A DNA stretch of 64,000 nucleotides from NCBI GenBank assembly GCA_964247055.1, contig OZ176050.1, positions 3,286,001 through 3,350,000 on the forward strand. The letters are read 5' to 3'. The stretch is from Paragordius varius. Lineage: Eukaryota; Animalia; Nematomorpha. The notes beneath the pieces were generated by a model. The model saw nothing but the letters and a program-made list of their open reading frames with translations. It ran no database searches and was not told the origin of the DNA. The translations under genes were made by a program, and so were the position numbers. Positions 15,844-56,800 of this stretch are shown piece by piece. Numbering within the stretch: the stretch's first letter is position 1; the number at the start of each line of letters is the position of its first letter.

Positions 15844-16096
15844 TTAAAATTTACATTTTTAATGAAAAAATTGTTATAATGCTGCTAAAAGGCTAAAGAG
15901 AGCATATATTAAATTCGGCTTAATCCAAAAATATTTCCTAAAATATTGAAATTTTAAACCGCTTAACGATATAAAACTACCCTAAAAGGTATTGGATAGT
16001 TATATCACACGTAAGGGCCATAACCGAGGAACATAATAATCCTGATACATTTTTCTATTTTGTTTTTGTGACACTGTCTTAAATCAAATATTATCT

Positions 16097-16138
<42 letters not shown>

Positions 16139-16470
16139 TCAGGCTCTTGCTTCTGTCACAGTGTATATATATTTTATATAATATTTTTATAGTTTAGTCC
16201 ATTGATTTTCTTTTAAACGCCCTAAAAAGGATTTAATAGCATTTATATCCTTTTATATATTTATTAATTTTTTCTGTTCAATATTTGTTATAATTTTATG
16301 ATACTAAAAGAGTGGAACAGAAAAATTTGGCCACTTAAATTTTTTGGGATACCTAATGGTATAACCTATAGTTTTTGGCGAATTAGAGAATGGCATTTCA
16401 AAAAAATATATTATTTGTATTGGTACAGATTAAAGTCAAATACTTAAAGCATTGCGGTACTTAACTTTAA

Positions 16471-17030
16471 CGATTCAAATTGGGGTATCTAAATACCCCA
16501 GACTAAATTTGAGTTATGATTAAAAAACTACTGAGGGAAACGGTCCAAATAATTTATGCTTCTATCCTAATAAAAATTATATAAATACAAAATGTCTAAA
16601 TAAAATTTTGCTTTGAAAAATAAAGCTCCATGTCTACTTGGCCGCCATTTTTATTTTACAAAAATTTTGCAAAATATTGTCTTTATTTGAATTGAAGGGT
16701 AAAATCAAAGCTAATTTTTGATTTAATTGCATCTAACATTGATAGAATTAGTAAAAGCTGTTTATTTTGTATTGTTTTTCAATTTTTACCATTGCAAAGT
16801 CACACTGACTAAATTTTTACCTTTCGGTTTTAACTTAAAATAAATAATATCAAGTATTTTTGAATAATTTTTTTATATATTTGGGCTTATTAATGTTATA
16901 TAAGTGCAAGATTTTGCAATGGTTTTGATTCTTTCCATATTTTTTAATAATTTAATTATAAACAGGCCTGGGGTATTTAACTACCCCAATTTGAATCGAA
17001 ACACTAAAATGAATGTGTTGTATCCAAGTG
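16471..17030. mobile_element. Second copy of the TTAA-flanked MITE, inverted relative to the first, copy A only
   Basis: TTAA at 16467-16470 and 17031-17034. Reverse-complement similar to 15342-15843 (acacttggatacaacacattcattt / aaatgaatgtgttgtatccaagtgt). Copy B reads ttaactttaaattaag with no insertion (~34095-34110). Confidence 0.7.
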
Positions 17031-17093
17031 TTAAATAAGTAAATGTTTTTTGGATCATACCAGTTAGTGATAGCATTATAATTTTGACACCGC

Positions 17094-19528: not shown

Positions 19529-19902
19529 TACTATCATTTTGATTTTAGAAATAAACGTCTGAATCTAGTGTCGTAAAAAATGTAAGACGATATTTTTATA
19601 TTTATATTTTTCATGCTAGAATCGAATGTGCAAAATATTACATAAATCAAATGCTCATTTTGACAGAAACAGTCGCAGTCCTAACCATTAAAATCCATTA
19701 GAAAATAGTATAAATGTAATTTATATATACATATGTAATTTATTTTATATTTAGATTAAATAATTTTATGTTACATAAGCTCTGTAAATAAATTAATAAA
19801 TCGATGATTGATTGATGAATTACAAAATAAATAAAATTGCGTAATCATAATGTATGATTTGGATGTTCCCATTTATTTTGCCAATATAATTTTGATCATT
19901 TT

Positions 19903-21040
19903 CTAATTTTTAAATTTTTTGTTGACTATTTTTTCTTCCTTCAAATTTTTGTTTTGCATTTCAAGATGGTTGACACTGTCAACTTCTGAATTTTCTACTT
20001 TTTTTTCAACATTTTCATTTGTTTCCGTGTCTTTTGTGGGCACATCAGAATTATTAGGTGTTTCAATGTTATCATCTGGTTTAGCTACTCCTTCGTTTCG
20101 AACTGACCCAGGCTAATCAAATATAAAAGCGTTTTTTGAACAAAGAATTATTTTAGAAAATAAAAGTAATAAGATGAAAACTTACGAGGTATACGCCTAA
20201 AAATTTGGGAATATTTTTATATAATATAAATTATAGAAATTGAATATTTATGATATAATATATGGGAATAAGGATTTACATTGGCAGTTGACTAAGAAAG
20301 AATTTGTAGGGCAAAATGTTGAGCAAACCACGGTTCCATTCACAACTTCACCTATAATTAAAATAAACGACGTGGATAAAGTTGAATTTTAAATTAAATA
20401 TTTTTAAAAATTAATTTGAGTTAAAAGTTTATAAATATTATATAAATTAGGATTCATTGAATCTTTCTGTATTTACTAAAAGAAAAAATCCAAATAATTT
20501 GTTTCATTTTATTTTTTTATAAAATTGTTATCTTATCCAAAACGTAAAATTTATAGTATTGCCATTTTAAAATATTTTGAAATAATCCTTAATTATAAAA
20601 ATATACAAAAAGAATTTTAATGCCCCTGTAATCCAAATCCAAGAATATAAAAATTAATATAATTTAATTATCTTATGTAATCAAATTATTGTTTTACCTG
20701 TTCCAGTAGAAGTTGAACCTCCTTTGCCACGGCTAATACCTAAAATTATTAATAAATTTGAAATTAATAAAAAAAAGTCAAAATAATGTATTACCCCATC
20801 CTTTGCCTTTTCCTAATTAAAGATAAATAATATTATTATTTAAAAATGAAAAATTGATAGTTATATTGTTAAAATAATAAATTAAATTACCATAACTGAC
20901 TTGTGGCACATAGTAACCTTTAGTATAAAAATACATAAGTTATGGTTAAATTCAAATATGGTAAAGAATTTAATGTCAAACCAATCTTTATTCTTAAATC
21001 CGTTTTAATTTTTTTAATATTTCTCCTTTGCCCCAATAAT
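19903..21040 (-). pseudogene. 5'-truncated copy of the micro-exon gene (copy A)
   Basis: Exons 20917-20891, 20812-20795, 20739-20698, 20351-20280, 20196-20186, 20112-19903 keep AG/GT sites and an open frame. The 21-nt exon equivalent (~21020-21040) has lost both splice sites, and the signal-peptide exon and three further exons lie beyond the duplication breakpoint. Confidence 0.8.
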
Positions 21041-21214
21041 TTGCCAATGAATAAATATTGTTTATATTTTTATAAAACAGTAAAAATTGCTATTACGGAC
21101 AAAACATAAAAATATAAAGACAAATATTTTTGTTTAAAAGACATTCACAATCTTTAAATTTATCTGTCATATATTTACACATAATTAAATTATATGTACT
21201 AATCTGCAGGTTAG

Positions 21215-22097: not shown

Positions 22098-22164
22098 TTT
22101 CCATACAAGGCATCTAACTCAAAAATTAGTTTTAATAATTTGAGTTAGATGCCTTGTATGGAAA
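22098..22164. repeat. Perfect 26-bp inverted repeat with 15-nt loop next to a (TA)n tract
   Basis: tttccatacaaggcatctaactcaaa (22098-22123) / tttgagttagatgccttgtatggaaa (22139-22164). Copy A has only the right arm (~1729-1754). Confidence 0.9.
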
Positions 22165-23769
22165 AATGGCAAAATTTTTGGAATTAAATGTGAACGCCTT
22201 GTTCGAAAAAAACATTATCTAAATATATATATTAGATGAATGACATTTGAATCGCAAAAGAAATATTAAATTATAGATATGGATATCCATAAGTGTTGAA
22301 TTTTTGGACCCCTCTCATATGAAATGCAACGATACCAATTTAACACATGCTAAATATTTATTAAAATTTTGATAAACCGTATATTGACGGTAAAAAATCT
22401 TATACAACAAATACCCTATTTCTGTATTCGATGACGATACTATCACCTTATCCAAATTTAAAAAAATAAGCTTTTTGCATTTCATTTATATTTTTAGACG
22501 AACAAATGTGTTAATCGAAATTCTAAAATCATAACAATGTTCAGCTGAATTACATAGTGCACTAAATCGGAATGGGTAAAATACACTAAGGAGTATTTCA
22601 CACTTTAAGTCATTGTTTTATGTTATTCACTTATTATGATTAGAACACTTAAAAAATAATATATCGTGGGATAAAACCGTGTGATTAAATATTTATTTCT
22701 CTATTATTTTGCACACTTATAATCCAAAATCAGTTTTTTTGCCAGTTCCTGCAATAGTTGGAATAGCAATTAATCGAAACTGACGAAAAACTATATGTAT
22801 TAAGTTTTATATCCATTAATATGATTCATAAATTCGAAACCCTAATTTGGATTTTATAGTTGTCTCTCATTCATTTTATTTAATGTGATTTAATCAACCA
22901 ATGAGATACTTTTAAACGATAACTATGATTTCAATTTTTTTGGCACATAAATCTATGTGATATGCAAAATATATGGTAAAAGTTAAAAATAAGAAAATTT
23001 GCATCTTCGGCAAAATAACACAGGCAATCATGCATAATTATAATAAAAAAAACTAAACAAACATGGTGTTTATGGTTTTGGTTCTTACGAGCTTTTTTTG
23101 AGATTGCTCCATGCTAAATAAATTTTTAGATAAAGTCAAATAGTTCATAATATCACTGTTATAATAACTATATTAATAAGGCAATACAATATTTTTGCAA
23201 AATTTTAATAGGTTTCGAAAGTAGTGAAACGAACATATATTAAACTTAAAATTTATTGAGTTTTTACTGGTAAAATGTAACCTTAAAGCTTAGTTATCTA
23301 TTTATTTTCAACCATAATAAAATTTTTCCTGATGCATTAGCGATTTAAATTATCTGTAGAAAAAAATGGAGGCAAAAAAGTTTGAGATGAGTTTTACAAT
23401 TTACATTTTGTTAAAACATTTTTTGTATAATACGCCTAAGAGGATACGGAAAATATATTTTTTTAGCTTAATAGTCTTAATACTTTTTAATATATTGTGT
23501 TTAGGTAGGCATATATCACAAAGCTGTAAAAAAATAAAAGCTTTTATATAATGCATGAGATCAATGTTTGTTTAAATTTTAACAAAAATGACTTTCAAAA
23601 CACTAGTTTTCGAATATAAAGCTTCCCAATATGTCAACTAGGACAAAAAAGCGAAATAGGTCATGAAGTGTGATTTTTATAATTTTCTTGAAATTTGTAG
23701 TATGAAGACAAAAAAACGTATTTAGATTCAATCTCCTTTAATCGACTCTGAGTTGATGGAAATGTTCGG

Positions 23770-23808
<39 letters not shown>

Positions 23809-24839
23809 CAAACTGTTTTTATTATTTTAAAAAGGTATTCATCCACGGTTTTAAACATAATCCAAATACTATAAAATACGCATTAAAATTTTTTTTATAC
23901 AAATTATAAACATATGCTTTATACAAAAAACATTTTTATACATATATTATTTATTTACATCATGCAATCAGCTTTTTTCGCTTTTATATTCGGTATTTCA
24001 GGCCCATTTTAAAACGGGCCAAAACGTTGAAACTCTGAAAGCCTACATCAAAAATTAAATTAAAATAATTACGCTTTGCTTTTTTCAATATAGATGATGT
24101 ATTAACGTGTTTGAATTGATTAATTTATACAAAATTTTTTAGATAAAGTGTTAAAAAACCCAAATTTTTGTATGGAGCTATTATCACAAAGGTGTGAATA
24201 TTATTTTTATGATTAGTAAACGACAAAATACAATTAATTGTAAAAATTTACACTACATAAACCTGAGGTACTCACCAACTAATTAAGGGGTCAAAAAAAT
24301 ATTTTCTTTTATCAAGTATGTTTTTCAAATTTTGATAAATACTTCATAGCCGTTGAAACATTTGCATATATTTATATTAGGAAGTATATATAAAAATTTA
24401 ACAAATAATTCAGGGTTAAACATTTCGGGCTACATGCGTCCACATTCCCCGGTTTGAGTATCAGTGATAAAGTCAGATATTACTTTAAAAATCTGATAAA
24501 ATTTCATGCTATTTTTTAAAAAAAATTTAGAATTTTATTTTTTACCACTTTGAGAAATATGCAAATAATATTTCTAAAAACGAGGGTATTCAATTGTAAA
24601 GGAAAGTGTGTATCCTTCAATTTAAAATATACATCACTTTCCCAAACTCACAGTTAAAAAATAAAAGATTTTAAATACATCCATTTGTTATATTTCGTTT
24701 AGCATGATCAATGAATACATATACGTACAATGAAGTGAATAATTGTTTTTAACCATAAATGAAGAATTGGCTTTAACTGGAAATCAAGTGTAAACTAACA
24801 GAAATATATAATTTCATATTTATTACATTTTTTCTTCCA

Positions 24840-27800
24840 TTAACTATAATTATTCTTCCTTTCCTTGGGTAAATTGGTAGTCGACGGCTGACTGCATTGA
24901 AACTTAGCTTTATTGATTTCGATATCTGATGGCATGTAAAATAATAAATGAATTAAACGTTCTTTTATTAATTTATGGTTGATTCCACATAACAAAATAT
25001 TAATTAATATTTCATTTTTTTGACAAAAATGTAGTTTATGGTAAAATAACTAAAAAATTCTCAATGTTCGCATTTTTTAAAGTTATTGAGTTAACAATGA
25101 TATTTATAATATAGGAGGTCATTTTTAAATATAATAATTTAGGAAAAATATAGTATTAATTTTCTGTTTTTACTCATTTATCAAATGATAGTTTAAATAA
25201 TGCGATATATTTCTTCCGAAATTTATAATGTCATAAAATTTGTCAGTGTCAGGCAAAACAATTCACGAATTAATTTGATAAAAATCATACCATGGTGACC
25301 AATGGAAATAGATTCTATTGAAGATAAAATTACTGAATCATGAATGTTAAATTTAATTAACTTTTCTTCATCTTGGTTTTTCTTGAAAAAGGGAAATAGA
25401 CAACTTAATCTCATTTTATAATTACTGACTTTTTTTCCTTCATTCTGGTTTGTATGATGGAAGGGAGCGCTCTGGGGTTGGCGGCCCCCGTCTCCATTAG
25501 ATGATTTGTCATTTGAAAGTGATATTTCGCATAGTTCCATATCTTTCATTTGAGTTCCATTTGTTTTTAACTCTGAGTTTTCTTTTTTGGATCCAAAATA
25601 TATGGTGAACATATTCTTTTTATTGGCATTTACATTGTGAGTCTTTTTTTCTCCACATTCTCCAGAAGAACTCTGGGGGTGGCGGCCCCCAGAGTCTCCA
25701 TTAGATGATTTGTCTTTCGAAAATGATGATTCGCATAGTTCCATATCTTTCATTTGTTTTTTGGATCCAAAATATATGGTGAACATATTCTTTTTATTGG
25801 CATTTACATTGTGAGTCTTATTTTCGTTTCCACATTCTCCAGAAGAACTCTGGGGGTGGCGGCCCCCAGAGTCTCCATTAGATGATTTGCCTTTCGAAAA
25901 TGATATTTTGCATAGTTCCATATCTTTCAGTTGACTTGCATTTGTTTTCAACTCTGAATTTTCTTTTTTGGATCGAAAACATATGAACATATTCTTATTG
26001 CTATTTACCTTTTGAGATATCTTATTTTCGTTTCTACATTCTCCAGAAGCGCTCTGGGGGTGGCGGCCCCCAGAGTCTTCATTAGATGAATTGTCTTTCG
26101 AAAACGATATTTTGCATAGTTCCTTATCTTTCAATTGGCTTGCATTTGTTTTTAACTCTGAGTTTTCTTTTTTGGATCCAAAACATACGGTGAACACATT
26201 CTTTTTATTGCTATTTACCTTTTGAGATATCTTATCGTTTCCACATTCTCCAGAAGCACTCTGGGGGTGGCGGCCCCCAAAGGCCCTGTTAAATGCTCGT
26301 TTCAAAGGTGAAGTGTTTTTAGTTTTCCTTTTTGAGTCTGAATGTAATTTAAACATAATAAATATTATTTAATTAATTATTATATTATATTATATTTTCC
26401 ATTCACCAGTTTTAAATATTTTAACCAACTGTGTTATAAGCCTTTTTTGTTAATTGTATCATTTAATTTTATAGATATTTTACCATGTGATGATAAGACC
26501 CCAGCCTCCATTTGATTATGTAAAATTTCAGTGAGGAAAGGGAATTCCTTTGTTTTGGCACAGTTTATTTCTTCAAAATTCGGTTTTTCATTGTTTACAT
26601 GTTGGCGGTTTACGGATGCAATACATAGAAAGGGATTGGGATCTGCAATCATAATATAACGTCATGTTTGGTTTCATGACACATAAAACCTTATTATTTT
26701 CGAATAAATACGTAATTAATTTGAATTAAATTAAGTAAAACATTATTCCAACAAATTTTATTACAAATGTATGAGATATAGGAATCGAATAAAAAAATAT
26801 TTATCGACAGATCTTCAAAAAGATGTCGGGCCAAACTTAAATCAAAGTGTTGAATAACTATTTACAGCTTTGTAGGTAAAAGTGTAGTGTGGTAAATATA
26901 AATATACCATTACACTTAAAATTGACCCTAGAACAATTCATATTCACGCTTAAGCATTAATATAGCTCATCATTCATACAAATTGGCATAGTATTTTTTC
27001 TCACGTTGATGTTAAACGAAATTTAATTTTTTAAAATATAAAAAATATAGATATTAACACGTAATAGGATGAATTTGAATTGTTCAATAAGGGTTGATCT
27101 GTAATTGGTATAATCACTTTTTATTGAATCGACAAATTTTTACCGAAAATATGGAGATATATTGTAAACAAAAAAATTTGATAATAAAATAAAATATAAC
27201 CTAATAAACTGGGTTCCCTATAGTTATCAGCAAATGGATTAGTAGAGTAGGTTTTATTTATTTCAATTGAATCTAGATAATTGTAAATTTAATATATTTT
27301 ATAATATATATTATAAATTTTGTTAATTACCTCTTTAAAATTCATCCATATATACCAATTACACTAAATAAAATAACTTATATAACTCCTTAACCCCAAA
27401 AAATTAAATACATCATGAATGATTCATTTCTCTACAAAATTACATATTTTTCATAAACCCCTTAATTTCGTGCACTGTATATATATAGATATATTCAACA
27501 AATTTTCCAATTATTAAAATGTGTCCCGATATAATTAAATAATTTTTTCTAATTCACAGTGATTAAGTATTAAGCCAAAAACCTAATTCCGGATCATTGT
27601 AGTTGTCGCTAAAGGGATTCCTAGAATACTGGCATTCCGCTGTATTTGATTCTAACAAATTACCATTATAAAACATTTTATATTAAAATAAAACTATATA
27701 ATATATATTACCAACCAATTTTATAAAGAATGTCTATTAATTTATTGTTACGCATAATAAATTGGACTTCTCTCTCTCAAAGCTATTTGCCATTTACAAA

Positions 27801-27980
27801 ATATATAATAGTATTAAATATCTCAGGGTCATATACATTAACATTTTTAATCAAATTCTAGAGTTAAGTTGAAGGCAAATGGAATTTACCGAAATCCTCA
27901 TCCTGTACATTCCAATCTTCATCAAAGGGATTTTTCGATGATGGCAAGATGTTTTTGTTAATTGAATCACACATAAGCAT
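24840..27980 (-). CDS. Unknown NPF-motif / GGRHPQS-repeat protein, copy B (~507 aa, 6 exons)
   Basis: Exons 27980-27890, 27651-27583, 27272-27201, 26642-26484, 26337-25291, 24925-24840, total 1524 nt, open. Five repeat motifs and four NPF motifs (exon 4 reads DPNPFLC versus DLNPILC in A). Confidence 0.8.
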
Positions 27981-29671
27981 ATTGATAGGAGATTTTAAAC
28001 TTTGAGATTATATTGGGTTTTTTATAATAGAGTTGGATTCCGGTCGAGACCAAGTATATATGATTCTTTGGAGGTTTTTATAAAAGTTAGGTATGTGATA
28101 CTCAATTAGAGTAGATATTCGAAAGCATTACTGTTTTTTATATAAATATTTTTGTGAGTGTTTAAATATTATATTTAAGATTTTATAAAAATAAAATGAT
28201 TGTTATAATAAAATGTAAATAAACTATCAACAATCAATTATGTTTTAACGAGAAAATAAACCCAATCATTTTCATTAAATATAATTAAATTAATATACCT
28301 AGCGCAAATTTAAAAATTATAATCAAATTTTGAGGAGGTAATTGAATTTTAAAATAAGTTTTTTTAAAAAAATATAAAAAAATAGAGGGTGGTTTTTCAT
28401 AAAATACAGAAGTAATATCCACAAAATCCTAAGTTTTTAAAAGAAATTTATAGGTTTATATTTTTTAGATAATTTTTAAGTTTAGTTTTAGCTTATTAGT
28501 TAAATAATATTTTGACGTTTACTGCGATTTTAAAAATATAAAATATTGGCTGGGAGAATTTTTCATAAAATGTGTATGCCTTTTATTATAAACTGGGAAA
28601 TTATCAATAGTCGATAATATAGACCCTCAGTTTGGCCTTCCATTCAAATTTTATAATAAAGTTTTAACGAAAACACCGATCATAGTCAAATAATTTCAAT
28701 TTTTCCAAAAAAATTTCCCTAAAAATATTATGCCTTTGTCATCCAATTACGGGAAATATCAATATTGGTGTAAGATATTTCAAGCATAAAGGCAAAAATT
28801 TAAGCCGAGACCATTTTTTACATTAACCTTTAGATAGGGTTTATTTTCAGTAAAAAGCGCCACCATATAATAAATAATCTCTCTCCCAAGCAATTTTCGA
28901 AAACACAAGATTATCTCGGAAAGCCTAGAAATAGCCTGTTTAGTAACATAAATTTTAACCCTTACGTAGGACTCTTTTTATAAAATGAGCCACTATAAAA
29001 TAATAATGTGGCTTTAAGCTAACCAACACAAAATTATAAAATAAAATTTAATCAATAATGGTTAAGAGGTTTCCTGTATCAAGGGTAGTTAATCGCATTT
29101 TTATATGCTGGCCAGATATCCATTTTCTTTAAATAAGCCACCATTTAAAATAAAATGGCTTTGAGGCCAATTTTTAGAAATCTCATAAAACCATAATTTA
29201 ACATAGAATAACAGTATCCATATAAAGACAAATTATAGCCAAGTGCCTTTTTTATATTAACGCCTGAATTCCTTTCGTAAAACACGTTATTATACAAAAG
29301 GTGGATTAACTCATTTTATAAAACCTATAGTTTATATATATTCGTATAACTATTCTGGTTTAAGCGATCTCAAATCCCACTTATTCCAGTTTGGGTGCCG
29401 AATATATCGGAATCATAACTATTTATCATACCAATTTTCAGGATAAACGAAAAGATGAGCTGTTTTTTTCTTTTTATTTCTTGGTTGATTCGATATCATT
29501 AGTTATAAAAGATTTAAAATAAATGCGTCCATCTTCAAAAACAATTTATTATTATTACTTTACAATAATTCCATATTACCAAGTTTAGTTTAAATGCTTT
29601 TTAATATAGTCCGTCACCTTCATTTATATTGGAGTTTTCGAATGATCATATTATTGAAAGGCTATTATTAT

Positions 29672-30315
29672 TAGGGTTGTGCATTTGACTGCTTTTTCAA
29701 AAAAGTTTGGTCAGACTCAGACTATGGTAATGACCGTGGTCCTGATCACTTTTTACTTAAGTATCTTGGATTGTCAAAATAATGTTCAAATTACACTTCA
29801 ACTAATAATGTCATGATTTTTAAAAGTTTGTATCATACATTTTTTGATATTAAAAATATTTCAATCATGAAACTATTATATAATGAATTTTACATGTTTG
29901 TGGCCTTCTGACTCATCAAATACATTGTTTTAAATGGATAGAATTTTTAATTGTTTTACACTTTCTTTCATCATTCATACATTCAATTATAGGATATTTT
30001 TCCATTTATAGTTCACATATATATAGAATAATTGCATATTTTATAAAAAGCTTGATTGTTTTTTTCGAAATAACTAAATATGCTTAAATGCTTATGTTAT
30101 AATGAGTCATGTTTAAAAAAATTGATATATTGTGTTAAATAAAATATTTAAATATTTAATTTTTAATTTCATAAATATATTAACAAACAATAAAATCTTA
30201 CTATCTCTCTTCCCAAATACCAGCATTTTTTCAAAAAACAGCTGTTTTTTTCAATGACCATGGTCAAAAAATAAATAGTCACTGACCTGGTCATGACTTG
30301 GTCATCACAACCCTA
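29672..30315. mobile_element. hAT-like MITE, copy B (inserted before the duplication)
   Basis: tagggttgtg ... cacaacccta with a perfect 8-bp TSD attattat on both sides. Same site as 9546-10201. Confidence 0.85.
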
Positions 30316-30902
30316 ATTATTATCCATACGCCACAATTAAATTTAGAAATAAAATAATTTTAATAGAATTCAATTTTTATACTTTATTAGTTTTAGGTGT
30401 TATAATTAAAATATGATTTTAATATTTTTATAATATACTATAAACCAAATAGTGTGTGGTCTGTAATTTTATATTCAAAACTAATGTTATAATAAATGTC
30501 CAAGTTGTTAAATTTTCATGGTATTCTCTTACTTTTTATATTGTTAATGCTAGAATAATAATGATCAGTATTAATTTATGTAAGATAAAAAATTTGGACC
30601 ATAATAATGTGTAATTTTATAATAATTTATGAAAAAACAACTACATTGTAACCTATTAACTAATAACTTGGCTTATATATTGTTAAACAATATATAAAAG
30701 TATTACCAACTCACATCTTTTTGGTTGTAATTAAATCAAAAAAGCATTAAAATTATATATAGCAGGTGAGAAAATTTATACTCTACCGCTTTTTGGCAAA
30801 TAAAATCGTCTCGTGACTTTATAAACTGAAATTATGAATGTTAGTTAATCTAGAAAGTGATATTCGTTTATTTTTACAAATTTCTCTTATAACATTTTGA
30901 AA

Positions 30903-31700
30903 ATGAAGAACCAGCTATGGTTTATGTTGATTTTGGTAATGATAGCTAGCATTATGATTTTCACAGAAGGTTAGTATTTTATTAATCATTATATTTGCTG
31001 AAAATTATATGACAGCCTTATGGTGCTCTATAGGCTCACAAAAAGTCATTTCCGACCAAAGAAATAATTTGCTCTTTTTTATTCCAGGAAAATAAAAGGT
31101 ATAGCCTCAACAGTTGGCGGCCCTCATAATGTTAATTAAAATAATCTAATATACAACATATGCGAATAGCAAAACCCTCATAATTGAAATATTTTATCAC
31201 ATCTTTATTCTATCTCATAATAAAGGCTATAAAATCTTTTTTAACAAAAAATTTGACCAAAAACAATAGAATTTTAAATATCTTTTTAACAGTATTAAAT
31301 ATATCAATTATTTAAAGAATTTCGATCCTTATATTATAAAATGATGAAAATTTATTCTTCTGTCTTTCATACAGAATTAACTTTCGACTGCAAAATTCGA
31401 AAATTGTTATATATTTATATTCTGAATTTAGAAAAAAACTACAACTCAAGGTCGCTTAAAATACTGAATGGTGATTTTTCGAGAAAATTAGCACGGCGGG
31501 GTCGTGGGGGCCGTGATGACTATTACGAAGACGATTATTACTATGATGACAATTATTATGATGATAGTATTTTTCGTTCTACTCGTGTAAATTCACGTCG
31601 AGTTACAACACCAAGAAGGCGGACTCAAAGAGTTACGAATTCAGCTAGAGGCAGAACTGTAAGAAATAGAGTTAGTCGTAGAACTCAAAGAGCCGGTTAA
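30903..31700 (+). CDS. Small secreted protein (91 aa): signal peptide, Asp/Tyr-rich block, Arg-rich block
   Basis: Exon 1 30903-30969 (GAAG|gttagt) spliced to exon 2 31492-31700 (attag|CACGG), phase 1. MKNQLWFMLILVMIASIMIFTEA-RRGRGGRDDYYEDDYYYDDNYYDDSIFRSTRVNSRRVTTPRRRTQRVTNSARGRTVRNRVSRRTQRAG*. Exon 1 is conserved in copy A. Confidence 0.8.
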
Positions 31701-34156
31701 CAAATGGGCTTAGGCGCCACACTTTTTTTATATATTACTTTTATTCCTGGATCAAATTTTGAAAAACATAAAAATTAATATTTTTTTTATTGTAAGGGTT
31801 TTTTGTCAATAAAAATATATCTGTTTCCATTATACACGTGTTTTCCAAACTTTGTAATATTGTAGTATGTAGAATTTCAGTTGTTAATGTGCAAAATTTA
31901 AATGGACTACATTGAAATTCAAATATGTGATTATTACTAATCGGCTTAATTTATATGTAATAAATTATCATTAAATGAATATACAAACCATGTAAAAGTA
32001 AATAAATAATGATGGTATGATATGTATCAAGAAAAGGGTCCAGTATTAAAAAACTAATGCTTGAATGTATGATTACAGAATAGTTGATCTTTTATCTTTT
32101 GGCTGGACTTCATGATCAAGTTTGTTGTAGGCTGACCTAAGGATAGGTTGATTAGATTTGATAGTAAAATTGGTGTTGTCTTGTATTGTTTTTGTGATTT
32201 TTTCTGAGTCAGCCTCTTTTCCTACATTATAATCATTTTATATATCTAATTACTTGGATTTTTTATAGGGATTGTCTATTCTATGAATAGCTATTGGTAC
32301 ATTAAGAAACAATAACTTTCACATTATTTCTATGCTTCAAATACTATAATAATCTTTAATTAAATTAAATTAGTTTAGAGCAAAGCATTTCGTATTGAGG
32401 ACATAGCCTTATTTGACGAATCTAACATGTTTTAAAATTTTGGACATCATATCCATATGTGTCCAAATAAAGGTCCCAAACGGGCTAATTTTCTTAAAAA
32501 CCAAAATGACCAAATCGAAGGTTCTTTTATTTAGTTGAATTAATGTAAAAACCCTTATTTTTATTTAACATAAAATTGAAGATGAACAGATATTTGGTGA
32601 TGGTGTTAAACACCAACGAATTATAAAAATGTTTTTTAAATCTTAAAACATTTTTCATCTTTATGCACCATGACTCAAATTAGTATGTACGCTTTAACAA
32701 AATTGTGTTGAAAATTAAATCTTTGCAAAAAGTATGCATTTTTTAAAACATTTGTTGATATCAAAATTTAGCATAAATTTAGAATTTTGCGCCATCCCGG
32801 CATTTTTGTGTTTATTTTAAAAGGACTAGCCCATTTTAGAAGTAAATTCGGCGTTCACTATAAATTAAAATTATTCAAAAATATTTTTGTTTTTTATGTG
32901 TAGTTTATAGTATTTAGTGATATTTTTGAAATGAAGCCCGTTTTTACCGAAAAAAATCATCATTGTCATTTTCAGATATACACTTACAATAAAAGTCATT
33001 AACTTTTCATTCTTCCAATTTTTACATATTGGGATAATTAGATATCCCAAATTTCGATTTAGTAAATAAACAATTAATATCAAAAACTGGTCTCATATAT
33101 TAAATAAAAAAGCCCATATTTTTTACATTTTTATGACATAGAGTTTAAAATCGGCATAGATCCAAAACACGATGAAAATAACAGCTGATATTAAAATATA
33201 AATTATTTCAAGTTTTTGTTGGTAAAAGGTAGTTGAAAGCTTCGGCTTATTTAGTTACATTTTTAACCAATATATACATTTATTAGACTACTGCATTATC
33301 GATAAAAAAATTATAAAAAAATGGCGGCAAAGTTTGAGATGTGAATTAATTTACAATTTTACATTTAATAAAAATTTTTAGGATAATGCTTCTAAAAGGT
33401 TAAAGAAAGCATATATTAAATTGAACCTAAAATTATAAAATACTAATATACAACCCTAAAAAATAATGAAGTGTTAAACTAAATCTAAGGGCCATAACCA
33501 AATGCACCATGATAATCCAGATACATTTTCCTCTCATATTAAAATATTATAAATCGGTTTATATATATGTATATAAAAATTATCAGGTTTTTACTTCTGT
33601 CACAGTTTATATATATTTCATATAATATTATTATATACCTCCCTCTCCCCATTTTTGCGCATTCATATTCTTACATAACTTAGATAAAAAAAAATTTAAA
33701 TTTAACTTATGAGTCAAAATACCATAAATTGTCTCGATGAATAAACATAGAAAATGTAAAGTGCTTAAGATGGTTGCAGGATTTCTTATAATTATTTGAA
33801 ATTATACAATAAAATTTTAGTGTAGTCCATTAATTTTTTGACCGAGGCCCTAAAAATGAATTTAATAAGCTTTATATCTTATATAGATTAAAGGGCAATT
33901 TTTTTTTATTCAATATTTGTTATAATTTTATGGTACTATCCGTGGAAATGAAAAAATTTGGCCCCTTAAATTTTTTGGGGATACCTAATGGTATAATCTA
34001 TAGTTTTTGGCGAAAGATTAGAGAATGAGATTTAAAAAAATATATTATTTGTATTGGTTCGGATCAAGGTTAAATAATATAAACATTGCGGTACTTAACT
34101 TTAAATTAAGTAAATGTTCATACCAGTTAGTGACAGTATTATAATTTTGACACCGC

Positions 34157-36660
34157 ATGTTTTCAAATCAGCATATTTTATATTTTTCAAGCCTCGTAAA
34201 ATTATACTTTAGCGAAACATGCTCAGAATTTTTTAAGATTATCTATATCAATGGACCTTTAACGCTGTTATCCTTCCATCGGTTAATCAAAGAGCAATGT
34301 AAAATTGCTAAAATATCCGAAGTTTATACCTTATTTAATTATTAGACTAAATATTTTTTGTCATTTCTCTTGTATAATCAAATTATAAAATACAATGGGG
34401 AAACCTACATCATTAATGATTCATATGTATTGTTTTTATCAAGGATAAATATGTATAATTTTCGTAATTAACAGGTTTTTGTATCATTCTGCAAAAAATT
34501 TAAATAAAATGGAATGCGAAATATTAAATTTCTTATCAAAACATGGACAATCAACTATAGAACATCTAAAAGATAATTTTAAAGAACTAAGTTTTGATTT
34601 TATAATAAAATAGATTTTAATGAGTTAAAAATGGCATTTTTAAATCTATCAAGAAATAATTATATTGGAACGAGAGCTATTTTTAACCGTGAAAATTCTA
34701 ATCTAACAAATTTTACAAATTTGGCATTCAATGTTTCCCAAGATGATATGAATAGTATATATTATATTTTTCTTATAAAAATGAATTCTGGATTCAACAC
34801 TAATTATTTTCTTACCGAATTATATATATATATTATATATATATATATATATAAATATAAATATAAATATTGTTTGTTCAAAATTGACAATTTATAAATT
34901 ATTTCACAAACACATATTATTCTAGCTTTAGTTGAACGCTCAATCGACACATCAGGTGAATTGATATCTGCCAACAAAAAACTTCGTAGTTCAACCTGCC
35001 GAACTCGGAGTTTATGGTGTCTTAATCCAAATAAGTTGACAAGCATCGTATTGGCTGATATTTTAAGTTCCGCTTTTTATTATAAATACATTGTGTTCTA
35101 TAACCAACTGATCAATTCGTCCTTCACAAAAGTTACCAAACAAAAGAATGTTGAAACATTTACACAAATTTTACGCTACATATTAGAAAATGTTGATTTT
35201 ACAGCAATTTGCAATGGTCAAAATCCTTCCACATACCTTGAAATAGATCCCTTAAACATTGAACGAGCCTATGGGCCAGACATTAAAAAGGAATTTATAC
35301 ACTGTTTAGATTTTTGTGCGCAACATGAAACACTTATGAGACATCAACAAAGCGCCCAAACCAAAGTTGCAGACCCCCTTAAAATGGCCACTTCATATAG
35401 GGAAAAAGCGTGGATAAGTCATGCTCGTGATGATATGTATTACAAATTTCATGTAAAAGTAGCCCTACTTGATGTGTTTGAACAATTTGTCCATCAATTT
35501 ATACAACAGCAATATGGTGTAAAATCCGCACGTATATATGGGTTTACATACATATAAATATGTAATTTATTGTTTTTTGGATGTTTTTTACTTTTTATCA
35601 TAGCATATTGTTGATTTCTAAGCAAGTTATATTAAATAAGCGTTTTAATGCTTGAAATTTTTATGTATTTTCGATTTATATTAAAATGTAAATGACATGC
35701 TAGTATAAATCATTTTATAGCTTAATACGAAGTTTGGGTTTATGTGAACAAAAAACAATCGAAGATTGTGCCATGATGCCGGCTAAAGAAGTCAAAGAAC
35801 ACCTGTATTCCTTGCTAGATTCAAAATTTTTAAACATTCTTGAGATTTCGAAGGCCAATGATTTTGCACCTTCACGCACTTTTTATTTGTTTCAACCGTC
35901 TACAATGTATCACACGGCTCTAGCTATACAAACTTATTTATACAAAGTATGACAATTTCATTTGTAATTATGTAGTTTTAATTGGTAGGATAGAGGTAAA
36001 TAGACACATAACAAATTTTCGATGGTTTAAATATGGTTTTTGGATAATTTTTATGTTAATTTATTACGAAATAGCATCGAGTTATTGCTTAATTTTTGTA
36101 CGTTGAAATCTACTGAATTCATATAATAACTTGTATCATTTTTTTAAAGATATTTTTATTAATAAACTATCAATTTAGCGCTTATTAAGTTGTAGATCGA
36201 TTAAGATTTCTTTCGCTTGGGTGTATCTAGCATTTTACATTATTTTACAAGGAAAAATTTATTAATTTGTAAAACAAAAGATATGCCAAAACTTACTTGA
36301 ACGGAGTGAACATGAGCATCGCCGATCTAAGCATTTACTTGAGAAACGAGAGAAAATTGAAGCAATTATTTCTAACCTTCCAGGCCCTGAAATCAATGAG
36401 AATTATGAGGAACAGGTCGCTGATATAAGATCATCCCTTTTACCTTCCGAACATGCTATCTTACAGGAAGTTCAACTTGCTCAAGAAAAGTTTGTATTAA
36501 AATTATATTTTTTAATGGGTACAAAAAAGTATACTTTTATATTTTAAATTGGTCAATCTTTACTTAATTTTTGTTTTATACCATTTTTTGACTGTGAACC
36601 TAATTAAGGTATCCAAGCGAGAATAATACTATCCTTTTGATTTTAGAAATAAACGTCTGA
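34157..36660 (+). CDS. POLR3C: RNA polymerase III subunit C3, copy B
   Basis: Exons 34157-34321, 34346-34452, 34475-34590, 34614-34754, 34926-35541, 35721-35946, 36281-36489, 36609-36660. Open when spliced this way. Same motifs as copy A. Confidence 0.88.
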
Positions 36661-37007
36661 ATCTAGTTTCGTAAAAAATGTAAGGTACGAGATTTTTTAT
36701 ATTTATATTTTTTTCCATGTTAGAATCGAATGTGCAAAATATTACATAAATCAAATGCTCATTTTGACAGAAACAGTTGCAGTCTTAACCATTAAAATCC
36801 ATTAGAAAATAGTATAGGATGTCATTTATATATATACATATGTAATTTATTTTATATTTAGATTAAATAATTTTATGTTACACAAGCGCTGTAAATAAAT
36901 TAATAAATCGATGATTGATTGATGAATTACAAAATAAATAAAATTGCGAATCATAATGTATGATTTGGATGTTCCCATTTATTTTGCCCAAATAATTTTG
37001 ATTTCTT

Positions 37008-38416
37008 CTAATTTTTAAATTTTTTGTTGACTATTTTTTCTTCCTTCAAATTTTTGTTTTGCGTTTCAAGATGATTAACACTGTCAACTTCTGAATTTTC
37101 TATTTCCTTTTCAATATTTTCATTTGTTTCCGTGTCTTTTGTGGGCACATCAGAGTTATTAGGAGTTTCAATGTTATCATCTGGTTTAGCTACTCCTTCG
37201 TTTCGAACAGACCCAGGCTAATCAAATATAAAAGCGTTTTTTGGACAAAGAATTATATTAGAAAATAAAACTAATAAGATGAAAACTTACGAGGTATACG
37301 CCTAAATATTTAGGAATATTTTTATATAATATATTTTATATAAATTGAATATTGATATAAAAGTTATATGGGAATAAAGATTTACATTGGCAGTTGACTA
37401 AGAAAGAATTTGTAGGGCAGAATGTTGAGCACACCACGGTTCCATTGACAACTTCACCTATGATTAAGTTGAATTTATATATTTTTAAGATTAATCTGAG
37501 TTGAAGGTTTTATAAATTAAATAAATTAGGGTTCATTGAAGCTAACTGTATTCACTGGGTTAAATAATCCAAAAAATTTGTTTGATTTAAAATTTTTATA
37601 AATTTGTTAGCTCATCCAAAACGCCAAATTAATAGCTAAAGATTGCTTATTTTTATTAGATTATTTTGAAATAATTTAAAGAAAATCACTAAGTGAAATT
37701 TATGAGTCCCCTTTAATCCAAATCCAAGAATGTAAAAAATAATAGTAATCAATTATCTTATGTAATTAAATAATTGTTTTACCTGTTCCAGTAGAAGTTG
37801 AACCTCCTTTGCCACGGCTAAGACCTAAAATTAATTATTTTAATAATTTTAAAATTAATAAAAAAAGTCAAATTAATGTATTACCCCATCCTTTGCCTTT
37901 CCCTAATCATAAATTAATTATTATTATTTAAATATCATAAGGTGATAGATAAATTGTTTAAATAATAAATTTAAATTGCATACCATAACTGACTTGTGGC
38001 ACATAGTAACCTTTATTATAAAAGTACATAAGTTAGGGTATAATTTAAATAAAAAATAGGGTAGAGAATTTCATGTTAGTTCCAAAATCAAACCAATCTT
38101 TATTATCGAATCCGTTTTTTATTAATTTTAACAATACCTTTTCCTTTGCCCCAATAATCTGCAAACAATGAATAAATATTGATAAAATTTTAATAATACA
38201 GTAAAAATAACTATAATACGGACAAAACATAAAAATATTAAGAAAATATTTTTGTCTAAAAGACTGTTGCAAAGTATAAAATAGAGATGTAAATTAGTAA
38301 AACAATAACTATTAATTTTAAATTGCAGTTTAGATAACTTATGTAGGAAAATTAAGGTTTAAAAAAGTATGGCTGTCTATTAAAAAAATATTTGTCTTGT
38401 CCGTATAATTTTTGCG

Positions 38417-38454
<38 letters not shown>

Positions 38455-39325
38455 GTATAAAAATATTACTTTGTTGAGGTTGATAGTATTGTTGTCCTTT
38501 ACCCTCTATTTTTTTATTAAATAGATTAATGAAATATAAAAAAATTTTAAAAGTAAATCTATTTTAATATTTACGAGTTTGGTATCCTTTTCCCTCTATA
38601 AAAGAATATAAAATCGATATTATAATAATTGGTAAATGGTATTATTTTGATTTTAATAATTGTTAGATCCGTCGTTTATTTAGTTTAAACCATATTAAGG
38701 CGATAAAAATTAAATGTAGGATCGGCGAAGTAGATAAGAAAGTAGACGGCATTTATCAAATTATATGAAATTAAGAACCTTAAACTACTAATCGCTTAAC
38801 ACTCCTACCTAAATTTTTTTCATAATGAATTAAATTAATATGATAATAATGATGATATACCTCGTATTAAATACCCAAGTGAATATAAAATTATACATTT
38901 TTCTTTTAAAAACGAATTATCGGTATATTTAATTGGCGGCCTTATTTGAAATATATGACAGCCCTTGTATAACAATTATATAAAATGCGACTGCTTTAAA
39001 AAGTATTACTCTTAAAAATATATTTAAAAAAGCAATCTATTGTTAATTCGTTTCCTCAATTGGTGCCAATGATGGATAATAAAAGTTTTTAAGACAAATT
39101 ATAAAAAAAATAAAATCTAGTGAATATAAATTACTTTGTTGGTCTAAATTGCAAATAAATTAAAAAATAAATTATATTTTAGAAAACGAAGTTTATGTTT
39201 AAAATTTAGATAAATATAAATAAAAATTTACATGATGGTTGTTGGTAATAATATCCCTTGCCTTTCCCATAAGCTTCAGTGTATACAACTAATAGAAGTA
39301 GGCCAAGAATAGCGATTTTGAACAT
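37008..39325 (-). CDS. Micro-exon gene encoding a secreted Gly/Lys/Tyr/Gln-rich protein (186 aa, 11 exons)
   Basis: Exons 39325-39232 (94), 39143-39135 (9), 38595-38575 (21), 38505-38470 (36), 38158-38138 (21), 38010-37984 (27), 37902-37885 (18), 37824-37783 (42), 37457-37386 (72), 37301-37291 (11), 37217-37008 (210). All GT-AG, sum 561 nt, no internal stop. Exons 6-11 are conserved with splice sites in copy A while the introns diverge. Confidence 0.82.
38219..38403. mobile_element. TA-flanked MITE-like element (~185 bp) in intron 4 of the micro-exon gene
   Basis: ta|cggacaa ... ttgtccg|ta. The left part recurs at ~21095-21142, and a right-half relative occurs at ~55300-55373. Confidence 0.55.
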
Positions 39326-47000: not shown

Positions 47001-50000
47001 TATAATTTAATTAAAATAAGTAGCAATATTATGAATCATATTGGAAAAAACAAAAATTAAAAATATATCAAAGTCCCAACATTGTAGATAATTTTTTACC
47101 TTAATTTCCTCGACTGAATTGCAACGTACTGGATCGGTTAAATCTTCCTCAGCGTTTTCATACCACGAATTGAAGGCTGAAGCCTTTTTAGCAAAAGCCA
47201 AGTAAAGTTCATCAATCTATTTTATATCAATAAGATTTAATATTCACAATTTTACAAAAATAAAACACTTAAACTAAACCATTTTGATAAAAAATGGTTG
47301 TAATTATAAATGTATTACAATTAGTTTTATGTTTTAAAACCCCAAATGGTAAAAATTTTGATGAAAAAAATATAAGCATTAATTAAAGTTATGTAAATTC
47401 AATAATTGTATGTATGTAAAAATAAATTTTGGATTAATATTATTGTAATTTGGTGAAAACAAAATATATTTTGCAGTATTGTAATTTAAAATATTAAAAT
47501 TTAAGATTATATAAATTATCTACAACTATTTTATATTTAACATCGCAATTCGTTTTAAAAATACAGTTATACATTTTAATGATTACTTATTGCACAATAT
47601 AGTATGGCAATTTGTAACACAGTAGTGTATGTTTGGAAAAATCAACAAAATGTTGAATAAACAATTATTTCCTTTCTTTTTACATGCACTTCTGTGTTGC
47701 GAATAATAGCAACCACTAAAATGCATACTGTAATTTTTAACATTTATTATCATCAAAATATTATCATAAAAAAGGCCTAATGAGTCCTACTATACCCTAC
47801 CTTTTTATAGCGATCTTTCATTTCTTGGAGTTGATCGCCACGCTGTTTAGCGCTTTGTGTTAATTTTTGCCATAAATTCATTATTAAAGCGTATCGATTA
47901 GCTATTATCCGTTTTTCTTCACTGCTTAATTCAGAAGGGCTCAACGATTCTGGACTTTTTTTGTTTGCATTTGATTGTTCATCAATCAATGATGTTTTCA
48001 ACTCTTTAAGGGTACGTAAGGCGCCCTCTTCTTCAAAACAGTTTAAACTGCGCATAAAATGTTCATGTTTACCCAATAAATTAACGACGGAAGCTAGATC
48101 GTGACCTGCGTTTACCATAAATATGAGATAAAATATAGTTTTATGTGACTAATCAGATGTTATACAATGAATAGTTGATGTAAATTTTTTTTTCATAAAA
48201 GTTAAGACAATAACAAAACGTTAAGATAATAAAGTAAAACCTCTACATCTATATTCAAATTAAAACTGCAGTAAAATTGGATAATATTCCCTAAAACTAT
48301 AAATTTAATTTTCCATAAAATTTTACAAAAAAATACCAAAATCGTCAGATTTCGCGGCGTTTTCTTTGTCCAGAATCCAATTTTCAGCCAAATCCGCTTT
48401 CCACATAAATTGGGCAAAAGTCGAATTTTCCTCCAGTTTTATCCGTCGATCCCGCGCTTCATCACAGAGCTTCTCCATTTTCGTACGCAATTCTTGACAC
48501 TTTTCTTTAATCAATTGCTCATGTATGTTTCCCTTAAAAATTAGTAAATAGGCAGAATATGTATTTTGGAATTATGTATGTTCAGAGAGTATGATCGGCC
48601 AGAAATAATAACCGGTATGAACTTAACCACAAACATTAAATATATGAAAACAAAATATTATGTATGTTTTAGTAAATAATAATATAAAAACAAAACATTT
48701 CTTTAATTTAAAGTAATATATATTTATATTTGACTCATTTAAATAAGTAACGGTCGCGGTCATGATTGCAGAATAACCAATTAAACTCACCTTCATTCAA
48801 CAAATACAAGTTTAGGCATGAACTCTACTTAAAAAATAAAGGCATATGATATATTTGTCAAACTTATTGTTAGGAAACCATTTATTGTCCATTTTTTTAT
48901 AAATAAACCTCTTCGCATAATTCTTTGCCGAGATTTTCGATGGCTACACAGCGATTCAAATGCGTTTCCAAGATGTCCGAAAAAATGTCGTGTTTCTTGA
49001 GTAAACTCTGCATATAAAAAGATTAACAAAGTCGATTAATAATAAATCGATTATAAAACAAGAAATTTTTCAATAATTTTATTTTTTATATACTTGTACT
49101 GCTGCCATATTTTCGCCATATCCATCCAAATTTAACACACGATGACTTTCCTATATAACAAATAATTTTATAATAAATTATACAAGCAAAAAATGAATTT
49201 CCCCACCATAAAAATTGTGATTATATGCTTTTGAACAATAAAAAATTTAAAATAAAACGCCTTTAAAAGGAAATGTAGTCAACAAAATTGCATAAATTAT
49301 TTGTAATATCATGCAATTCGGTTTGACAAAGTTTAACAGAACTAAAATAACTGCCTAATAATTAAAAAGATTTTTATTGATGCTTTGGTCCCTCCAAAAA
49401 ATAACTACCGTAATATACCTTGACCCAAGCCAATTCTTCAGCAACGTCAGCGTTAAATTGTTGAAACGTTAGACTATCATCCAATTTTCGGCTACGTAAT
49501 TCAAACCGTTGTCTCAATTCATCCCAATCGTTTTGGAGTTGTGAAAGTTTTTCATCAATCTCTCCAGCTCCCTGGGATCCAGCACTCATTAATTCACCCT
49601 TAATTTGTTCAGCTAAGTCAATCGAATTCTATTAAACAAGGAAATGATAATTGATTGATTTATATATTGATCAAATTTATCATACAAGCATTTTTAGCGA
49701 TGATTAAGTATCGTATAATTAACTTATTTTCCTATAAAAATATTTATGTATAAAGAGACAAAACAAGATAAAGTAAAAAAAAAACAATTCATAAAAACTG
49801 TAATTTATGACTTTGATTTGCTTTAATATATCGTAAGGTATTATTTTGGAATTGAACATAAGGGTCAAACATGTAAATTAGTAGCATGAAACATTATTAT
49901 TAAGAATCAAAAAATATGAATGTTATTCAATTGATGATTGTATAAAAAATTTTTAACTCTTTTATTGTCTTAAAAATCTATCTATATTTTATTCTATAAA

Positions 50001-53828: not shown

Positions 53829-56800
53829 TAATACCCATTTAGGCGAGCCCCAACAATATGAATGTTGGTGTTAGAATATTATAAAAATATTTTATGTTAT
53901 GTTTTCAAAAGCTTTTAAATGCAATATAAACATATACAGTTTGAGTATAAACACATATGTATTAATCAATCTATTTTTTAATTTGTCTAACTATCAATAA
54001 AGTATGTTCACAGAAAAATTAGACGCACCGATAGTGCTGGATACATATAATTACTATTAAAAAGTTTTAGGTTTAACAAAATAGTTGAACATACCTCACG
54101 CCGTTTTTTATCAATAGCAGTTGCGTCATAATGTCCAGAAGAAATGAGATGATCTGCAAAATTTTCCAGATTAGCAATTTTCTCCTCCTATATATTATAG
54201 AAAAAAAAAATACATAAATCATGGTACAAATATCTATAAAAAATCACTTTGCAGAGTTAATATAACAAGACTTTAAGCCATAATAACTTAACAAAAATAG
54301 TTATTTTCTCTGTAATATTGCAAAGTTTTTTTTCGTTAATTTATAGGGCACCTGGACATTAAGGGCTTTATCAAAATCTTCATGTTTTTTGATGAGAGCT
54401 TCAACCCCATAATCCGTGGTGGTGGTATTTTCGACAGGACTGGTGGTAGTGCCTTCCTCGGCGGCCCGCAAAAAAGCTTCCCTCGTTTGCATCCAATGTT
54501 CAGCCAATTCACAATCCCGATAAAACAATTGACTCTCCAAACATTGATCCAGGAGTTGACGCTTTTTCAACCATTCTCTGTGGCAACGATGGGTTATAAA
54601 ATACGAAAAAAACTGTTAATATTCGATGAATTTGGATATAAATGCATGCATTTGATTGTATATAATAGTTAAACAAGAAAAATGGCTAGTTTTTCATTAA
54701 ATATTGCCAGATAGTATTCACAAAAGAGTATTTGATTAAGGGCTAGATCGAGTGAATACCTTTTTGCTTATGCACTAACTTAAAATGATACTATTTCGTA
54801 AATTAAAGTAAAACCAAAAATATTTTATTACAAAAACAGAAGAATAAGTGGGAAACTGTGTTTACTGGGTATAACGTGTAGTTTTTATTATAACATTTCC
54901 GATATACTCATAATTACATTTTTTTAATTGATAAACGGGATCGAAAATAGTTATAAAAATATGGGCTAATCCTTTTTATAAAATGTGCATATAAATATAT
55001 AGATCTATACTGTTCCAATGTTTTTCTTGCGTCTTCCAAATTCATAAGAGCCTTTTCTATGGCGGGCGTTTCATAATGACCGCGATGAAGTAAACGATTC
55101 CCAAACGAATTAAATGCATCAAAAGCGGGTTGTCTCGATTCAATTTGATTTCGATAATCCTATGTATAATATAACAGTAAACATAAAAATATACATACAT
55201 AATTTATATAATCTAAACGATTACAATAGAAAGCATAATTTACTATCCTCATATATCTCTATTCCCAATTTGGCAACCCAAGAGAATAGCCTATCATAAA
55301 AAATTAAGGTTAAAGTGGAAAAAAGTATGGCTATTAAAAATTATTTGTCTTTAAATTTATATGTTTTGTCTTTGTATTTATTTTTATTGGTTAATCGGAA
55401 CAAAAGTTTAATAAAGTATGTAGAATGTATGATGAAAATTTCCTCAAATATAATTTTAGTAAATATTTAATAATTTAAAATATATAGTCAAATATCATAC
55501 TTATAAAAACAAACTTACCATATGTTTTTCCAAGAGCATTTCAGCAGCAGTAACATCATGTACAGGCTCAAAATTTGCAAACTGATTCGTCATATGATTG
55601 ATCCATGTATTCAAATCGCTAAATTTCAAAAAAAAATCCATATTTATAAACCAAAAAACGCATATTAAAACTTCAATAAACTCAATAACAAAAAGCACTT
55701 TTTTAAAAAATAGATGAATTAAATATATTTAGTAGACCCCCACTTCCGCTCATTTTAAAAATTAAGGAGCTCATTGTGATTATAATTCACTTTTCTTATT
55801 AAAATTCTAGTGGTATAATTGTTTATGCCTTCTTACAAACTTATATGGGTATTTTGAAGTCCTGATCATGATTTACGTAAAACAACAATGGATTTAATAT
55901 TAGATTTACTTTTAAAAAAATTCAATCATTTTCAAAAAAATATAGGATGCCGTGAGTCATCTATATATTTGGAGCTATTGGGGCAGATCAACACTGTAAA
56001 TTTAAATTTTTAGAGTAAAGCAATTTTACTTATATTCGTCCAAAAATTTGTGATATTCAAAACTATCTTGTAGTTTGGCATCATATTCACTCGTTTTTCG
56101 TGTCAAGGCTTGCCAAGCATCATTGATAACTTGCATCCGTTCACTTATATCGTCAGCCGAATCGGGGTGACTCTTTATTAATCTAATCGATGTATCTTCC
56201 AAATGATTAATCTAAAATATAAATAAAATTCATGATGATTTTCACCAAATTATTAAGAAACTATAACACTTCTCAACAAGGTTTTGCACCACTCCATTTT
56301 TTGCATTTTCTGATACCTAATGGAAGGCCAAAACAAAAAAGAAAATTGAGGCCGTCAATAGAATTTTTCCAAAATTTAATTTTTAAATTTGTATTTAATT
56401 CAAAAATAACAATCATTCCTCGTGTACATATGTTTAAATATTCAAACGAGCAAGTCGATACAAGTTATATTCCATGCATGGATAACAAATAGGCATTAAA
56501 TAAGATACTAAACAAGCTAAGAGCCAAAGTATTAAAAATCTAAAAGGGGCTTATGTATAGTGTGATAGATCCGGGCGGCTGCACAAGCTCTGCATATCCC
56601 CCAAGTGATCCTATAATTTTGCCAAATATGGCAAAGATAACAATAATTAATCGTAAAGTCCGACAAGAGAGACTTGCAAGCAAAATTCAGGCAAATTGAC
56701 ATGTCAAATTAACCAATTTACAGAATAAAGTTAGATAAATTCTACAATTAAATTGAATATAAATTAGGTAAATACAAATGGTCCTATCCCATAACAGTAA

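Follow-up and report, generated by a model that had tools for sequence, protein, structure and literature searches.

A gene hidden in serial phase-1 micro-exons of a horsehair worm is predicted to encode a small secreted GKGKG/Tyr/Gln-rich protein

Does the genome of a horsehair worm hold a protein-coding gene cut into pieces so small that a list of open reading frames (ORFs) passes over it? The question is raised by a 64-kb stretch of Paragordius varius (Nematomorpha; contig OZ176050.1, positions 3,286,001 to 3,350,000; here called the window and numbered from its first letter), in which an earlier note had proposed a micro-exon gene on the minus strand. Reading from 39325 to 37008 in this AT-rich DNA, we found a coherent 11-exon gene with a coding sequence (CDS) of 561 nucleotides (nt) and a predicted product of 186 amino acids (aa). 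The exon strings, lengths, boundaries and phases that the note had claimed were all located as described, and its spliced product agreed letter for letter with the translated CDS. Because the ORF listing of the region yields only fragments of 33–52 aa, an ORF-based reading is blind to the gene, as the note had also said. Judged from the DNA, the gene is very probably real, intact and protein-coding, and its splicing, expression and isoforms are predictions.

The anatomy of the gene is regular (Table 1). Exons 2–9 all have lengths that are multiples of 3 and each is flanked by phase-1 introns, and every internal exon (exons 2–10, 9/9) begins at codon position 2. These symmetric micro-exons 2–9 account for 246 of the 561 coding nt (44%) and the exons of at most 36 nt for 132 nt (24%); exons 1 and 11 together make up 54% of the CDS. 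The introns measure 88, 539, 69, 311, 127, 81, 60, 325, 84 and 73 nt in order. All ten are GT–AG introns that open with GTA, eight of them with GTAA, and the AG is preceded by an A/T-rich tract. Nothing in the gene is broken: it has its ATG, both splice dinucleotides of every intron (20 in all), an uninterrupted frame, a stop codon and the AATAAA.

Our scan for a signal-like start followed by a GT donor in phase 1 returned exon 1 alone. Exon 2, only 9 nt long, is the only candidate of matching composition between exons 1 and 3, and it is needed because joining exon 1 straight to exon 3 or to exon 4 creates a TAG. The remaining skip joints keep the frame open, so the earlier proposal that any subset of the exons can be skipped in frame holds for most joints and fails for these two. 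At the other end of the gene, the 11-nt exon 10 is needed because the frame of exon 11, which a paralogue validates, is reached only through it. Several in-frame alternative AG and GT sites also lie inside the exons. Two introns have features of their own: intron 7 (37825–37884) is largely self-complementary, with a 75% match to its own reverse complement over ~ 70 nt, and intron 4 carries at ~ 38417–38452 a (TA)n microsatellite that is common to several other sites in the window.

We asked if such a chain of short exons could be assembled by chance from AT-rich DNA. The GC content of the exons is 0.38 compared with 0.19 in the introns. A six-frame translation of the whole window contains 21 GKG tripeptides; the gene, 2.3 kb long, accounts for 9 of them, all in the frames predicted, and its partial duplicate for another 4. 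As a null set we took, from both strands of the rest of the window, every stop-free AG..GT segment of 9–45 nt that would fit as a symmetric phase-1 exon (n = 1,572). Only 0.95% of these candidates contained ≥ 70% G/K/Y/Q, and only 0.3% contained GKG or KGK, whereas the G/K/Y/Q content of predicted exons 2–5 and 7 is 80–100%. The gene also shows a strong codon preference for CAA, AAA and GAA that agrees with that of the neighbouring galactosyltransferase gene. Composition, GKG clustering, the null set and the paralogue are four independent lines of sequence evidence by which the predicted gene is more than chance.

The paralogue arose with a tandem segmental duplication of ~ 16–19 kb (1729–21142 versus 22139–38264, 88–89% identity). 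On its right-hand side the duplication breaks off within intron 4 of the gene (21142 / 38264), so that exons 5–11 have a second copy at 19.9–21.05 kb, ~ 17 kb from the gene. In this partial duplicate, which we call copy A, exon 5 is dead, having lost both splice sites; with this exon included, copy A spans 19903–21045 on the minus strand. Exons 1–4 are absent, and in their place stands ~ 1 kb of other sequence with a weak match to endonuclease/reverse-transcriptase-like (retrotransposon) sequence (E 0.034, below the Pfam cut-off). A signal-like replacement first exon was sought upstream of copy A, and none was detected within 3.5 kb.

Between the gene and copy A, identity is 96.0% in exons and 83.4% in introns (Fisher p 2e-11), and every AG and GT of exons 6–11 is kept. 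Over the 126 codons of exons 6–11 we counted 15 differences, of which 10 are synonymous and 5 non-synonymous (6 and 4, respectively, in exon 11). This corresponds to a pS of 0.122 and a pN of 0.017 for synonymous and non-synonymous changes and to a ratio of the two rates (dN/dS) of 0.13, with a p of 2e-4 against neutrality, and indicates that exons 6–11 are under purifying selection at the level of the DNA. The exons and frame of this part of the gene, including the 11-nt and 18-nt exons, are thereby validated. The particular value of the gene is this built-in paralogue, which permits a selection test; a partial duplicate is rare internal evidence that micro-exons of 11–27 nt are selected coding exons. 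The synonymous bias exceeds what is expected if one copy had been drifting freely since the duplication (p 0.014). Copy A may have been truncated recently, may have undergone gene conversion or may still be in use.

The gene and its predicted product have the parts that the earlier note had listed. Eight symmetric phase-1 exons in a row follow a signal-peptide-like exon, and the chain contains a block rich in GKGKG, Tyr and Gln, then a module with four Cys and a tail of acidic character. Residues 1–18 combine an n-region (MFK) with an 11-residue hydrophobic core (mean Kyte–Doolittle value 3.4), T at position –3 and A at position –1; cleavage at the predicted site would leave a mature chain of 168 residues. 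A (K/Q)-G-K-G unit stands at or beside the start of each micro-exon. From these features we infer a small secreted protein.

Table 1. Positions in the window of the gene, its poly(A) signal and copy A, and segments of the predicted product (by residue)
Feature	Position	Strand	Description
Exon 1, 94 nt	39232–39325	-	ATG at 39325; signal-peptide-like residues 1–18, then first GKGKG-YYYQQPS; ends in phase 1
Exon 2, 9 nt	39135–39143	-	Y-Q-Q; individually the weakest exon
Exon 3, 21 nt	38575–38595	-	K-G-K-G-Y-Q-T
Exon 4, 36 nt	38470–38505	-	Q-G-K-G, then Q/Y/P run
Exon 5, 21 nt	38138–38158	-	N-Y-W-G-K-G-K; counterpart in copy A lacks both splice sites
Exon 6, 27 nt	37984–38010	-	100% identical to copy A
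Exon 7, 18 nt	37885–37902	-	G-K-G-K-G-W; 1 synonymous difference from copy A
Exon 8, 42 nt	37783–37824	-	G-L-S-R-G-K-G-G, then S/T/G run; 1 L/I difference from copy A
Exon 9, 72 nt	37386–37457	-	N-G-T sequon and first 3 Cys of C-x3-C-x10-C-x-C; 3 differences from copy A, all synonymous
Exon 10, 11 nt	37291–37301	-	Completes fourth Cys; phase 1 to phase 0; exon and AG/GTAAGT flanks identical in copy A
Exon 11, 210 nt including TAG	37008–37217	-	Acidic N/E/K-rich tail, 68–69 aa, net charge –6
AATAAA, candidate poly(A) signal	36978–36983	-	24 nt past the stop codon; copy A has AATAAA at equal distance
Copy A, exons 6–11	19903–20917	-	AG/GT sites intact, frame open
Copy A, single exons	20891–20917, 20795–20812, 20698–20739, 20280–20351, 20186–20196, 19903–20112	-	
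Product, block of 72 residues	residues 19–90		G 26.4%, Y 16.7%, Q 17%, K 13.9%; net +11, no Asp/Glu
Product, Cys module	residues 91–118		C-x3-C-x10-C-x-C (last pair C-Q-C) and N-G-T sequon
Product, tail	residues 119–186		16 acidic and 10 basic residues; net –6

We then asked if the product belongs to a described family, a match that according to the earlier note would remove its novelty. A HMMER search with the 69-aa tail exon against 1.84 billion representative proteins found no relative, and Pfam contained nothing that matched the tail, exon 1 or the 36-aa Cys module. One match to the tail, P0090 (E 8e-5), proved to be an unrelated repetitive ORF. A homology search with the genomic ORF of exon 1 gave no match and the ESM Atlas gave no lead; as the searches used separate exons, they could miss a relative that only the GKG/Tyr block or the Cys module would reveal. 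The searched literature contained nothing relevant on a GKGKG motif and no paper that connects micro-exon genes with Nematomorpha or horsehair worms.

What might such a protein do? The best explanation, to which we give about an even chance, is that a real 11-exon gene encodes an extracellular cohesive or adhesive matrix protein. The protein would act outside the cell as a component of, for example, the cuticle, egg-string glue or the larval cyst wall. Its Tyr/Lys/Gln/Gly repeats would be multivalent "stickers" that make cation–pi, pi–pi and hydrogen-bond contacts, and they might also be substrates for cross-linking through dityrosine or 3,4-dihydroxyphenylalanine (DOPA) or between Gln and Lys. 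Lys, Tyr and Gly together are the chemistry of mussel and sandcastle-worm adhesives, and the combination of Gln with Lys would also suit transglutaminase. The Cys module would lead to disulphide-linked multimers, and the acidic tail would neutralise the cationic block up to the moment of deposition, and so could hold the protein in solution. The first 20 nt of exons 3 and 4 are nearly alike, which suggests exon duplication. Because of this likeness and because the micro-exons start at (K/Q)-G-K-G, the simplest origin of the micro-exon layout would be repeat growth by exon duplication, of which the layout would be the trace; in-frame skipping would then be a by-product of exon duplication, used or not.

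Known matrix proteins offer a comparison for the block. The eggshell precursors of trematodes, which are cross-linked by tyrosinase, contain 11% Tyr and 44% Gly (p14) or 26% Tyr and 15% Gly (p48; PMC3499410), and the Gly (26%) and Tyr (17%) of the block are within their range. Like these precursors, mussel foot proteins and sandcastle-worm cement proteins, the predicted product would be secreted and has a disordered block in which Gly and Tyr dominate, with Lys in addition, and segments of opposite charge that could drive condensation. The likeness is one of composition only, and a Gln content of 17% is unusual for those proteins. With its sticker block of Tyr, Lys, Gly and Gln and its acidic tail, the protein would be a compact candidate underwater glue or matrix component that can be expressed and tested.

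Several observations weigh against this explanation, some at the level of the gene and some at the level of its function. Exons 1–5 are without a paralogue and are predicted from composition, splice sites, frame continuity and codon usage, and the signal peptide was called by eye and by rule rather than by SignalP. Intron 10 and the 300 nt past the stop codon are ~ 96% identical between the two copies, and because they are as conserved as exon 11, the conservation of the exons at the 3′ end may be partly non-coding. None of the seven sequencing runs (from four studies) that match the stretch is recorded as RNA, and no public gene model or assembled transcript backs the gene, since the representative proteins include none that contains the tail. 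As to the function, it is read from composition alone, and defence peptides show similar Gly/Tyr/basic compositions.

That the gene does not work at all, whether as a silent relic with a still intact look or as open segments, bounded by AG and GT, that line up by chance, appears very improbable to us. It would fit the lack of a protein record matching the tail or the exon-1 ORF and of a matching run recorded as RNA, the weakness of the 9-nt and 11-nt exons when taken one by one, and the example of copy A, in which pieces of the gene persist without the 5′ end. Chance, however, is excluded by the composition, the GC contrast and the synonymous bias relative to the paralogue, and the gene has kept its start, splice and stop signals, its open frame and its AATAAA. 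Also rather improbable is a peptide precursor with a role in defence or signalling, secreted, cationic and rich in Gly and Tyr, in which the acidic tail would be a neutralising pro-region that is removed at activation. The order of signal peptide, cationic block (+11) and anionic tail (–6) is the one expected of such a precursor, and an anionic pro-region is a common logic among host-defence peptides. Nematomorpha are closely related to Nematoda, whose Gly/Tyr-rich NLP/CNC peptides would be comparable to the block in composition. The block is, however, rich in Gln and Tyr rather than amphipathic, and between block and tail there are no dibasic processing sites, the Lys residues standing in a G-K-G context and not as KR or RR.

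The remaining alternative is the one that the earlier note had suggested, a variation device of the kind described for the micro-exon genes (MEGs) of Schistosoma. Combinatorial skipping of micro-exons would yield a population of secreted isoforms, distinguished from one another by one or a few repeats, which would act where parasite and host meet, either to evade immunity or to manipulate the host. MEGs carry most of their coding sequence in tiny symmetrical exons (PMC4350168), of 3–81 nt (bioRxiv 10.1101/2023.06.21.545858; PMC4350168). The gene shares much of this design: after a signal-peptide exon come very small symmetric exons, here eight in a row, between longer first and last exons, the exon sizes of 9–72 nt are within the MEG range, and the product is small, predicted to be secreted, without known domains and overlooked by automatic annotation. 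Every MEG product has a signal peptide, and residues 1–18 fit one by rule. Skip joints that are open in all but two cases, alternative AG/GT sites in frame within exons and the fact that nematomorphs are parasites of arthropods would all suit a device of this kind.

On the other side, the symmetric micro-exons hold only 44% of the CDS here and most of it in MEGs, and the introns of the gene are short (60–539 nt). The dN/dS of 0.13 in exons 6–11 indicates purifying selection, whereas MEGs are reported to evolve at an accelerated rate (PMC4350168). A MEG family is defined by its sequence, and such families are apparently restricted to platyhelminths, whereas this gene is from a nematomorph, its tail has no sequence relation to them, and its tail, Cys module and exon 1 have no Pfam match. 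Alternative splicing of micro-exons gives rise to MEG protein variants; for the gene described here such variants would be a prediction. The loss of one repeat from a repetitive, low-complexity block would, moreover, add scant antigenic diversity. The MEG-like architecture claimed earlier thus stands as a shared design and is limited by the share of the CDS, the tail without a relative and the two joints that give a stop; the idea of MEG-like variable splicing receives little support from the present evidence, and we consider the variation device unlikely.

The bicycle genes of aphids provide a second comparison. They encode an N-terminal signal, and their internal exons are numerous, unusually small and nearly all begin at codon position 2 (bioRxiv 10.1101/2021.09.24.461719). 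The gene has a predicted signal sequence and the same phase in all nine internal exons (position 2 corresponding to phase-1 introns), and in both systems the length of the protein scales with the number of exons, which is 11 here compared with an average of ~ 17 and a minimum of 5 in bicycle genes. Bicycle genes are defined by CYC motifs, whereas the gene has C-x3-C-x10-C-Q-C, no CYC and no relatives that we found; they occur in hemipterans rather than in a worm, and the product here is repetitive and of low complexity. As far as its sequence goes, the gene shares an architecture with MEGs and bicycle genes and is a member of neither.

If transcribed as predicted, the gene is a well-controlled case of a secreted low-complexity protein encoded one repeat per phase-1 micro-exon in a horsehair worm. 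ORF-based annotation and many automatic annotators miss such genes, and the annotated secretome of these parasites is therefore probably incomplete.

Immediately upstream of the gene and on the same strand lies a single-exon ORF of the beta-1,3-galactosyltransferase family (Pfam PF01762; 40741–42342, minus strand). Its best match is a protein of near-equal length from Gordionus sp. (Nematomorpha; E 9e-61, 35% identity, 81% coverage); matches in other animals have E values of 1e-28 or worse.

A second hidden gene for a secreted protein lies ~ 5 kb away on the plus strand (30903–31700) and has a duplicate near 10.7–11.6 kb. Its first exon encodes a signal-peptide-like stretch, and its 3′ exon codes for an acidic block rich in Asp and Tyr and then for a block rich in Arg, a charge pattern opposite to that of the GKGKG gene. 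The predicted products of the two neighbouring genes might be partner polyelectrolytes. A wider conjecture, which we regard as a long shot, is that Nematomorpha join flatworms and aphids as the third lineage of animals with secreted proteins built from serial phase-1 micro-exons, that the exons work as a "sticker counter" in which skipping tunes the number of Tyr/Lys/Gln repeats in a glue, and that the glue is perhaps a two-component condensate with the co-duplicated protein 5 kb away that is Asp/Tyr-rich and then Arg-rich.

The duplicated DNA also includes two long ORFs on the minus strand, 25223–26356 (377 aa) and 4775–6091 (438 aa), which are duplicates with internal tandem repeats of ~ 200 nt and no Pfam match; their repeat units contain G-G-R-H-P-Q-S and S-G-E-C-G. 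Sequencing runs labelled as three other organisms hold 7–23% of the 31-letter words of the stretch; these organisms could be close relatives, or the samples could be mislabelled or be host samples that contain worm DNA. Further along the window, spectrin-repeat exons of a large minus-strand gene were seen at 47777–48118 and 58976–59329. A 1.1-kb repeat is present as an inverted pair (13059–14198 and 56267–57400, 91% identity) and is probably a mobile element.

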